A DNA stretch of 64,000 nucleotides. Source: Macrostomum lignano (lineage: Eukaryota). Positions 44,306 to 47,300 of this stretch are shown here, piece by piece. The notes under the pieces were generated by a model that saw nothing but the letters and a program-made list of their open reading frames with translations, had not been told where the DNA came from and did not search any database. The DNA is taken from contig NIVC01000430.1 in assembly GCA_002269645.1 (NCBI GenBank), positions 1 to 64,000 of the forward strand, in the 5' to 3' direction. Each line of letters begins with the position of its first letter. Position 1 is the first letter of the stretch. Made by a program: the position numbers and the translations under genes.

Positions 44306-47300
44306 TCAAGCAACCTCTGCAGCCGCAGGAACATCGGCATGGCAGAACATCCGGTAAGCACTGTTTGCGTCAGTTTCAAGCACATCACCGGCCCCTCTAG
44401 CCAGCAGGTCGGCCAGGATGTCCTTGAACTGTGGTCGCAATGGCGCGGCCTGCCAGCAGGTGTGCATGAGGCTGGCCAATCGACTCGGACAGTCGGACGG
44501 TGGCCGGAGATGGCGTCGGCCAGATTTCACCACGTCGGCCACCTGAGAGTTGCTTAACAATCCGTACGGCTGAAGAGCTCCAGTGGCGATCTCCCAGAGT
44601 GTGACGCCGTAGGACCAGACGTCTGACGCCACGCTGTACCGTCCGGTGCGCAGCGTCTCAGGCGCCATCCAGCGCACGGGGACGCCGCAGGATGCCACCA
44701 GTTGGCGACGGACGCGGATGGCCGAACGGCGCAATCGGGCCAACCCGAGATCTGCAGAGGTGCAGGTTTATGAGGATTTTCATGGCAGCACGAGAATCGA
44801 CCAAGGACTACTAAAGTAGAAGGACGCAACAGTCGAAATCTATGGAAAATTTTTTGAAGGCCACTTTACGCCGACAAATACACTACGGAGATAGGAAGTT
44901 TTCTTTTTTTCAGCACAAAACTTGTTATTGCTTTCTGTAAAAGGCAGACCAAATGTTCATCTTTTGATATGTTGTATTTTATTTTAATAACAAGTACACA
45001 AGTACAAGTACAAGCACACACAGGCCCCTCGCAAGCTTGCATACAACCAACTCAAACTCAGCAGTTAAAATGCCGAACCAACCTGCCACCACGACGTTGA
45101 GTCGTTCGTCGAGCAGACAGTTTCTAGCCGCCAGGTCGCAGTGCAGCAGGCCGCGCTGGTGCAGGAACGCCATGCCGTCAGCGATCTGCGCTGCCCACAG
45201 CATCGCCCGAGCGTTGCAGACTCCGCTGCCGCCGCCTTCTCTAGCGAGCGCTCTCAGGTAGCGTCGCAGATCGCGCGCGCCGCCAGTTGAAGCACCAGGT
45301 AACGCGGCCGGCTTGTCGACACGACGCCAACCAGGCGAATCACGTGACGGCAACCGTGGTCGCCGAGCCGCTTCAGCCACTGCGCCTCGGCCAGTAGGCG
45401 CCGGCTTTGCCCGCCACCGCTGCCGCTGCCACCTCTAACGGCCGCGTCGAAATCTTCAAATGTCGTCTTGACAGCCACCCCGCGGCTCTCCGACGCTGCG
45501 GCTTGGGCGACCTCGCCGAGGTAAACCCGGCCGTAGGATCCCGCGCCAGCGGCGGCTGCTCCCAGAAGACTCGCAGCTGGCGCCGAGGCAGTTCGTGCCG
45601 ACCGAATCTTCGTCGACGCTGCCAGCGTCTGAGGCGAACCGCGCTGACTGCGACAAGAAGGACGACCGCGGCGACGCCCGCCAGGATGGCAAAAATCAGC
45701 TTCGACCGGCTGCGTCGATGCAACTCGACAAATGGCATCGTCAGATTGACTGGCGGCGTCCAGGGCCCGGGCCGGACTGGCTGACTGCGCGCACCTGCAC
45801 CAGATATCGCCGCCCTGGGCCCAGGCGCGTCACCGCCAGGCCACCTTCCACTTGCCGCTGCCGCTGCTCGGTGCTGTTCCTCCGCCAGTCGGCGTAGTCA
45901 ATGCGAAGCAGCCGCGACTGCGGGTTGGTGTTGCCCTCCGCGGCTGAGACCAGCACCTGCGGAATTGGTTGGCGGACAAGCAATGGCAAGCATTGCCAGT
46001 CAGATAGACAGACAGACAGACAGACAGACAGACAGACAGACAGACAGACAGACAGACAGACAGACAGACAGACAGACAGACAGACAGACAGACAGACAGA
46101 CAGACAGACAGACAGACAGACAGACAGACAGACAGACACACAGACAGACAGACAGACAGACAGACAGACAGACAGACAGACAGACAGACAGACAGACAGA
46201 CAGACAGACAGACAGACAGACAGACAGACAGACAGACAGACAGACAGACAGACAGACAGACAGACAGACAGACAGACAGACAGACAGACAGACAGACAGA
46301 CAGACAGATAGACAGACAGACAGACAGACAGACAGACAGACAGACAGACAGACAGACAGACAGACAGACAGACAGACAGACCTCAAAGTGCAGCAGCCGA
46401 CCGTTCGGCTCCTCAGGCTTCGCCCAGGTGACGACGCCGCTTCGTCCATCGGCGCTGGGAACGACGTGCAGCGCCCCAGCAGGCAGGGCGTCGGCCAGCG
46501 GATCGGGCGGAGTTCGGTAGCAGATGCTTGCAGAAGCGGAGCAGAACCGCACGCCGACTGCGCAAGGGGTGCTTATAGGGGCGTGGCAGGCCACCAGCTG
46601 CGCGAGAGAAGGGAATAAAACGGTAAAAAGATCGATGAAGTATCCTTTGCATAGCAACCAGTACCACCACCATAGCAACGAGTTCTATCTGCCTAGCAGC
46701 GCGTTTTATCCCCATAGCAACCTTTATCATCCCCATAGCAACCTGTATCATCCCCAGAGCAACCTGTATCATCCCCAGAGCAACCTGTATCATCCCCATA
46801 GCAACCCATCTCATCCGCATAGCAACCTGTATCATCCGCATAGCAACTTGTATCCTCCATGATGACAAAATCTTTAGCTTGCAGTCTAACATCTAAATAA
46901 ATTTGTTTTGACTTTACAGGGAGTCCCAATCGTAGAAAACTTGCATTTAAAATTGGACGATCATGTTTGCATTATGCTACTGTAAGTGAATAAGTAGCGC
47001 AGTTTGGGCATTTTAAGCATTTATTCTTTGCTTACAGCCGCACCCAATTCGTGTGCGTCATCGGACTTTGGGAGGCTGTGCAAATCCTATTTAATGAGAT
47101 CCGGTGATGGCAGCAGCTTCCGTAATGATTTGGGATTGGGTTTAAAATTTCTTCAAGTCAAGTTCATTGCCAAACATATATGATTGACTCTCTAGCTACC
47201 AGCATGATCCTGACTGGGGGATGGGCCATTGCGCAGATTTGTATGCATTAGCAGGCGGCTTCGTATTACACTGCTCATCCTTTTTCTTGCTCTTCGAATA

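Follow-up and report, generated by a model that had tools for sequence, protein, structure and literature searches.

To our knowledge, all characterised insulin and insulin-like growth factor (IGF) receptors, flatworm ones included, are activated by trans-phosphorylated activation-loop tyrosines that dock on the Arg of the HRD motif (the RD Arg). Decoy or truncated insulin receptors (Drosophila SDR, the decoy InRs of insects, and C. elegans DAF-2B) lack the kinase domain entirely and have been proposed to act as modulators rather than as IRS relays. Among flatworm receptors, SjIR-1 and SmIR-1 lack both NPXY and the first Tyr of YxxxYY (PMC2844434), and EmIR2 lacks NPXY (PMC3923246). The recognised human receptor pseudokinases are EphA10, EphB6, HER3, PTK7, ROR1, ROR2, RYK, and STYK1, with no InsR-family member among them (PMC13259870); ROR1 and ROR2 carry HKD and DLG, keep the Lys, Glu, Asp, and Asn, and have an occluded ATP site (PMC13259870, Table 2). 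We found no InsR-family member described in the literature that combines a catalytic loop without the RD Arg (non-RD), DLG, and an activation loop without Tyr. Here we describe an insulin-receptor-family gene of Macrostomum lignano in which these three features occur together. It lies on the minus strand of contig NIVC01000430.1 (assembly Mlig_3_7), from 62522 to 44306 (10 exons, ~18 kb), within the 64,000 nt (positions 1 to 64,000) that were analysed and are referred to below as the window, and its domain order is signal peptide, L1, Cys-rich, L2, FnIII region, transmembrane (TM) segment, and tyrosine kinase. We put at about an even chance the overall interpretation that this is an old InsR paralog whose kinase has been remodelled in its regulatory elements, with fold and catalytic residues kept, and in which the breaks in the assembled reading frame are most likely assembly deletions.

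The original prediction, made from the letters of the window, had placed the receptor at 44306-45760; the kinase and TM segment do lie there, but the gene runs much further, up to 62522. The TM segment consists of 21 hydrophobic residues (45699-45637), and the kinase matches Pfam PK_Tyr_Ser-Thr (E = 1e-62). The following elements were read in translation:

45636-45568, minus strand: juxtamembrane segment of ~30 amino acids (aa), Arg-rich in the retained frame
45547-45530, minus strand: Gly-loop GAGSYG
45478-45467, minus strand: VAVK
45397-45371, minus strand: helix-C Glu in LLAEAQWLK
45143-45120, minus strand: HCDLAARN (CAC TGC GAC...)
45083 and 44751-44744, minus strand: DLG, its codon interrupted by a phase-1 GT-AG intron

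HRD is changed to HCD, DFG to DLG, VKIGDFG to VVVADLG, and the YY of the activation loop to RV; the Gly-loop, the VAVK Lys, the helix-C Glu, the catalytic Asp and Asn, and the Asp of DLG are retained. The sequence features that the original prediction had listed were all located on the minus strand. The 92 nt of activation-loop DNA contain not a single TA dinucleotide, so that a Tyr codon is impossible in every frame of the loop, and NPxY is absent from all three frames between the TM segment and the Gly-loop. The earlier claims of a Tyr-free loop and of a ~30-aa juxtamembrane segment without NPxY therefore stand regardless of any error of frame. The original prediction had named the missing NPxY as a feature of this paralog; the motif is indeed absent here, but its absence, like that of the first loop Tyr, is typical of the clade and already published for flatworm receptors of the IR-1/EmIR2 type (PMC2844434, PMC3923246). 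Relative to the published flatworm receptors, what remains new is the non-RD state, DLG, and the change of YY to RV.

The window comes from a draft assembly with a demonstrable indel load, and the reading frame next to these motifs is broken three times, which would favour the view that the motifs are themselves sequencing or assembly artefacts and that the true gene is a canonical InsR. We regard this as very improbable. The errors documented for this assembly take the form of indels and not of substitutions (33 indels but one mismatch in the first 3.6 kb of the window), and HCD, DLG, and RV are encoded in frame, with perfectly conserved motifs on either side. Nor would a shift of frame recover what is missing, since no loop frame holds a Tyr codon and no juxtamembrane frame holds NPxY, and the juxtamembrane segment is ~25-30 residues short of holding the canonical segment.

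The original prediction had also offered a loop reading with restored G residues (ARDCAV...NWW). This reading is disfavoured, as the loop read in the assembled frame matches its trematode counterparts position by position (S..RVRR..VPVRW versus S..YYRR..LPVRW); codon usage in the loop hardly discriminates between the assembled frame and the NWW frame. In the juxtamembrane segment, codon usage at 45600-45665 favours an alternative acidic frame over the Arg-rich frame by ~19 bits, and the acidic frame would require two further compensating indels in exon 9. We retained the Arg-rich frame because a trematode homolog carries ARRRRATMRGLGR after the TM segment and because it is the more parsimonious of the two, but the choice is ambiguous, and NPxY is lacking in either frame.

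We aligned 43 InsR-family kinases and obtained 62 columns that are at least 95% conserved. The M. lignano kinase keeps 49 of these 62 invariant columns, including VAVK, the helix-C Glu, HxDLAARN, RPxF, and all catalytic and core motifs. Roughly half of the 13 changed columns are conservative (F/Y, M/L, V/I), and one (G to A) sits on a frameshift site and is unreliable. The nonconservative changes affect the hinge (MELM to LQLA), the R of HRD (to C), the positions around DFG (K to V and F to L), and the loop YY, whose change to RV requires at least four nucleotide changes. We infer that the non-RD, Tyr-free state arose while the gene was under selection and not as recent decay, because the changes are too many and the remaining domain too well kept: comparable neutral divergence would be expected to leave stops across 1388 codons and eroded core motifs, neither of which is seen. 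The joint loss of the RD Arg and of its phospho-acceptor Tyr is a coherent, not random, signature of a kinase that is ungated by loop phosphorylation. An InsR-like kinase fragment from a marine eukaryote metatranscriptome (P0003, ERR1712061_238506) has HCDLAARN with DFG and YADYY intact, and is an independent case of RD Arg loss in this kinase family.

The family assignment is consistent across several comparisons. In a search of PDB sequences, the closest solved sequences were the INSR and IGF1R kinases (E ~1e-48, versus 1e-39 for FGFR4, the next family). An AlphaFold model of the kinase has a predicted local distance difference test (pLDDT) score of 82 and a predicted template modelling (pTM) score of 0.84; confidence is low only in the activation loop, in a short stretch of the N-lobe, and in the tail. 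The top Foldseek match of the model is the activated INSR kinase 4xlv. An exhaustive HMMER search returned no relative with more than 47% identity, the best single-domain matches being insulin receptors of trematodes and arthropods. A tree built by neighbour joining places the kinase as sister to the InsRs of Calicophoron daubneyi and Echinostoma caproni (bootstrap 92/100), on a branch ~2x the length of theirs. The original prediction had called the gene an InsR paralog and had proposed a phylogeny with the canonical copies as a check. M. lignano does possess canonical InsRs with HRD, YxxxYY, and NPDY (A0A1I8IAZ6 and A0A1I8FKZ1, whose loop reads VYYSDYY), and the tree places them in a separate clade, apart from the divergent copy. 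Judged from the alignment and the tree, the gene is old and genuine and belongs, on a long branch, to the flatworm InsR clade that includes the trematode receptors.

The trematode InsRs (Calicophoron daubneyi CAL8069763.1, Echinostoma caproni VDP90629.1, and Fasciola gigantica TPP62725.1) have the same order of L1, Cys-rich (CR), L2, FnIII, TM, and tyrosine kinase domains, with a kinase identity of 43-47%. They share with this gene the lack of NPXY, an Arg-rich stretch after the TM segment, and a missing first loop Tyr (DFGLARYLNSDQYYRRHGQGRLPVRW in trematodes), but they keep HRD, DFG, YY, and a furin-type RxRR, whereas this gene has HCD, DLG, RV, no furin motif, and a much shorter juxtamembrane segment. 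The canonical M. lignano InsRs also have the same domain order and share ectodomain blocks with it (HTDFLQ.LW, NRRLC, GYS.YYR, ADPS.C), with just 32-45% identity; HRD, VYYSDYY, and NPDY are theirs and not its own. The gene has three of the features of an IR-1-type receptor (grouping with trematodes, no NPXY, no first loop Tyr) and lacks the retention of YY; it apparently belongs to this type, an assignment that rests on the shared features and not on the named SmIR-1 and SjIR-1 sequences.

A precedent for the motif state is provided by ROR1 and ROR2, which likewise combine a non-RD loop (HKD versus HCD) and DLG with an intact beta-3 Lys, helix-C Glu, catalytic Asp, and Asn. They belong to a different family and differ in having an Ig-Frizzled-Kringle ectodomain, an altered Gly-loop, and loop tyrosines, whereas the M. 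lignano kinase has an intact Gly-loop and no loop tyrosines. Since ROR1 and ROR2 keep the catalytic residues and yet have an occluded ATP site, the residues retained here are no proof of activity. This bears on whether the protein is a catalytically competent non-RD tyrosine kinase, with its activity set by dimer geometry or ligand and with docking sites other than NPxY, which we consider unlikely. Such a kinase would be consistent with the presence of GxGxxG, the VAVK Lys, the helix-C Glu, the HxD Asp, the Asn, and the DxG Asp, with a predicted fold nearest to that of the activated INSR kinase, with P0003, in which HCD coexists with intact DFG and YY, and with accepted flatworm insulin receptors that signal without NPXY (PMC3923246, PMC2844434). 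However, ROR1 and ROR2 are pseudokinases in spite of the same retained residues (PMC13259870), family-invariant positions of the hinge and of beta-8 are also altered (MELM to LQLA, K to V), and the intracellular part contains just eight tyrosines and no obvious docking motif.

The gene model spans far more than the kinase. Once one N is placed at each of four sites, the open reading frame (ORF) has 1388 codons with zero internal stops; all nine introns are GT-AG, and the phase of each fits the next exon. Its parts, with the adjoining scaffold gap and the guanine plus cytosine (GC) content of the long exons, are as follows:

62429..62522, minus strand: exon 1, ATG and signal peptide MAASWRLLKLVVHLILYLVFLMLATVNG; donor GTTGGT, phase 1
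57315..58208, minus strand: exon 2, L1 and Cys-rich (furin-like) region; 894 nt without a frame break; GC 0.58
56428..56676, minus strand: exon 3, end of the Cys-rich region and start of L2
54295..54451, minus strand: exon 4, middle of L2
50290..51238, minus strand: exon 5, end of L2, FnIII-1, and start of FnIII-2; one base short at ~50422 (PNGLV^EYLLY); GC 0.65
49035..49131, minus strand: exon 6, insert-domain segment (NCTSC...LYERMA); the acceptor is the second AG of TTTTAGAG
48013..48199, minus strand: exon 7, remaining insert domain and FnIII-2b; R-x-K/R-R furin site absent
46382..46597, minus strand: exon 8, first half of FnIII-3
45957..46381, minus strand: intron 8, 425 nt, with 385 nt made up by a (CAGA)n/(GTCT)n microsatellite whose first unit supplies the donor GT
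45083..45956, minus strand: exon 9, end of FnIII-3, TM segment, juxtamembrane segment, kinase N-lobe, and catalytic loop; GC 0.68
~45763, ~45566, and ~45273, minus strand: frame breaks of exon 9, one base short at each
44752..45082, minus strand: intron 9, GT-AG, phase 1; interrupts the Asp codon of DLG
44306..44751, minus strand: exon 10, DLG, Tyr-free activation loop (to 44657), kinase C-lobe, 31-aa tail, and stop (44308-44306)
42854..42934, no strand: scaffold gap of 81 N, 1.4 kb past the last exon; junction of two assembled pieces near the frameshifted exon

The introns consist mostly of mini- and microsatellite arrays (periods 4, 8, 21, 22, 24, 26, and 37). Antisense to exon 1 and overlapping it, an Arg/Gly/Gln-rich ORF of 206 codons occupies 62433-63050 on the plus strand, with no called gene on record.

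As assembled, the frame shifts by -1 at ~50422 in exon 5 and at ~45763, ~45566, and ~45273 in exon 9, and the kinase/TM exon is not a single ORF. A frame scan by codon usage, with coding sequence from elsewhere in the window as its training set, independently finds all four shifts, and one added base per break restores exact collinearity with homologs (PNGLVxEYLLY versus PNGRVTHYLLW, GPGPW versus QPGRW, and LAARxDLRRYL versus LMENGDLKTCL). Short introns were rejected as the cause of the breaks, as the homolog alignment is continuous and the nearby GT..AG pairs, judged by eye, are only 11-26 nt apart. The four breaks fall in the two GC-richest long exons (5 and 9), and none falls in exon 2. Mlig_3_7 was built with Canu from PacBio continuous long reads (CLR), polished only with Pilon (Illumina genomic DNA and RNA-seq reads), and scaffolded with SSPACE, and 63.95% of its bases are error-free by REAPR (PMC5730564). 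Between positions 1-3564 of the window and a duplicate on NIVC01000396.1 there are 33 indels of one or two bases and just one mismatch; the two look like one sequence that was assembled two times, its consensus left unpolished at the end of the contig. Beyond the first 3.6 kb, one-base homopolymer indels are scattered between NIVC01000430.1 and NIVC01000396.1, one of them within the Casc1 coding sequence. By comparison, a gene copy at 22.05-22.95 kb of the window that has clearly decayed shows 19-bp and 11-bp deletions and 10-13% divergence, a pattern unlike that of the InsR locus. We judge it slightly better than an even chance that the four frame breaks are assembly errors. They would then be uncorrected one-base deletions of the PacBio/Canu consensus in GC-rich and presumably poorly expressed exons, and would carry no biology.

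The same comparison touches two further genes of the window. Positions 1-3564 overlap a 7tm chemoreceptor gene, for which an intact annotation (801 aa) exists only on NIVC01000396.1. The Casc1/DNAI7-like gene (8452-10992, plus strand) has a homeolog on NIVC01000396.1 that is one base short (GGAGG[C]CG, window ~8600), so that its annotated product has 651 aa versus 767 aa for the copy in the window; a conserved gene of this assembly thus shows a further one-base frame break.

Several observations weigh against an old paralog kept under selection and broken only in assembly. Four breaks in 4.2 kb are several times the background of discrepancies, for which the better stretches of this scaffold gave an estimate of ~0.2-0.4 per kb per pair. 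The tandem arrays flanking exons 9 and 10 (43.7-44.2 kb and 46.0-46.4 kb) are nearly free of indels, so the region is not grossly unpolished; poor quality beside the scaffold gap, considered as the sole cause of the breaks, is weakened by the same arrays. No protein at least 50% identical to this kinase is present among 1.8 billion representative proteins, and word-index searches with the kinase and with L1-CR matched no protein of the same species, which is weak evidence only. The kinase has lost 13 family-invariant positions, versus at most seven in any other member, and these losses together with the long branch would also fit relaxed constraint. No ortholog was found that shares the motif changes and would show them to be conserved.

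These points lead to the alternative, close to a refuting outcome named in the original prediction (an untranscribed, decaying locus), that the locus is a young pseudogene, the homeolog of a once-functional divergent InsR paralog, disabled recently after the M. lignano whole-genome duplication, in which case the deletions are real and the locus is silent. We hold this to be possible, if rather doubtful. It would account directly for four frameshifts in the assembled sequence and for an annotated or assembled protein not being found, and the window contains a second decayed gene copy. The genome is neopolyploid, mostly with about three copies per locus that are 1-2% diverged, and redundant copies are expected to decay (PMC10733133). 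Moreover, a CpG transition turns HRD into HCD, and a single transition turns DFG into DLG. On the other hand, every lesion is exactly one base short and lies in a GC-rich run, as is typical of the residual error of this assembly, and the 1388 codons and nine introns show no nonsense codon, larger indel, or lost splice site. Even if true, the pseudogene explanation leaves the motif changes unexplained, as these are too numerous beside a conserved domain for a recent disabling. A dead homeolog would serve mainly as a caution that draft PacBio assemblies of GC-rich neopolyploid genomes yield frame-broken genes that invite over-reading.

The original prediction had described the ectodomain as full InsR-type. 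We recovered Pfam matches to Recep_L_domain (E = 3e-19 and 3.5e-11), Furin-like (E = 3e-19), and fn3 (E = 2e-13, in FnIII-3); FnIII-1 and FnIII-2 align with the M. lignano and trematode InsRs, to which the full-length protein is collinear, and the description is upheld by the L1/Cys-rich/L2 matches and by this alignment. The insert domain is short (~60 aa), and VTDLYERMA, which follows the NCTSC cysteines, bears a weak likeness to the alpha-CT segment FEDYLHNVVF, judged by eye only. No R-x-K/R-R furin motif occurs across the whole ectodomain of the gene model (62522-45700, minus strand), whereas the trematode and canonical M. lignano homologs have furin sites (RFRR or RFGRR). Because the motif is lacking, cleavage into alpha and beta chains may be absent and the receptor may be uncleaved.

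If the gene is an old paralog with its coding sequence intact, the receptor could still dimerise and would probably bind an insulin-like peptide. Its kinase would not be switchable by trans-autophosphorylation of the activation loop, and docking of IRS or Shc through phospho-NPxY would not be possible. One possibility would be a weak non-RD kinase that is constitutively poised; the other, for which the HKD/DLG ROR receptors are the model, would be a pseudokinase that partners the canonical InsRs, modulates them, or serves as a ligand sink. The function put forward in the original prediction, that of a phosphorylation-independent, IRS-uncoupled receptor acting as a decoy or as a modulator through heterodimers, is plausible. 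In contrast to the decoy and truncated insulin receptors, this gene retains a complete kinase domain that is well folded in the AlphaFold model. The stronger claim, that it is an expressed and intact InsR member turned into a non-RD kinase or pseudokinase with a full ligand-binding ectodomain and an activation loop free of Tyr, which signals or damps signalling independently of autophosphorylation and IRS docking, for instance as a partner of canonical InsRs, seems to us somewhat unlikely. If true, the InsR family would gain its first described non-RD receptor or receptor pseudokinase, found in a model of regeneration and ageing that is amenable to RNA interference and transgenesis. An intact gene would provide a natural test of whether an InsR-type ectodomain can couple to a kinase ungated by phosphorylation, and of how additional InsR paralogs influence insulin-like signalling in the growth, germline, and regeneration of flatworms.

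Directly downstream of the InsR-like gene lies a caskin-like gene with ankyrin repeats, SH3, SAM, and a Pro/Gln-rich tail (~28900-41000, minus strand). Neither gene is present in the sparse GenBank annotation; no Mlig_3_7 protein was found for the caskin-like gene, and the older ML2 UniProt models (A0A1I8HW74 and two others) are visibly frame-garbled. A secreted Cys-containing protein (signal peptide, ~300 aa, CFTESQFASICEPPVRV...) is represented by three tandem paralogs, at 16609-17532 (minus strand), 20335-21321 (minus strand), and 22053-22950 (plus strand). The first two are intact and lie in a 13-23 kb stretch without an annotated gene; the third, which is inverted, is the decayed copy mentioned above and, given its two deletions and its divergence, is probably a real pseudogene. 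The window further contains a GST-omega-like exon at 24491-25216 (minus strand), with no start codon visible upstream, a CDGSH iron-sulfur protein at 12745-13011 (minus strand), annotated as 5'-partial, and an aquaglyceroporin at 5413-6429 (plus strand) that is identical on NIVC01000430.1 and NIVC01000396.1.

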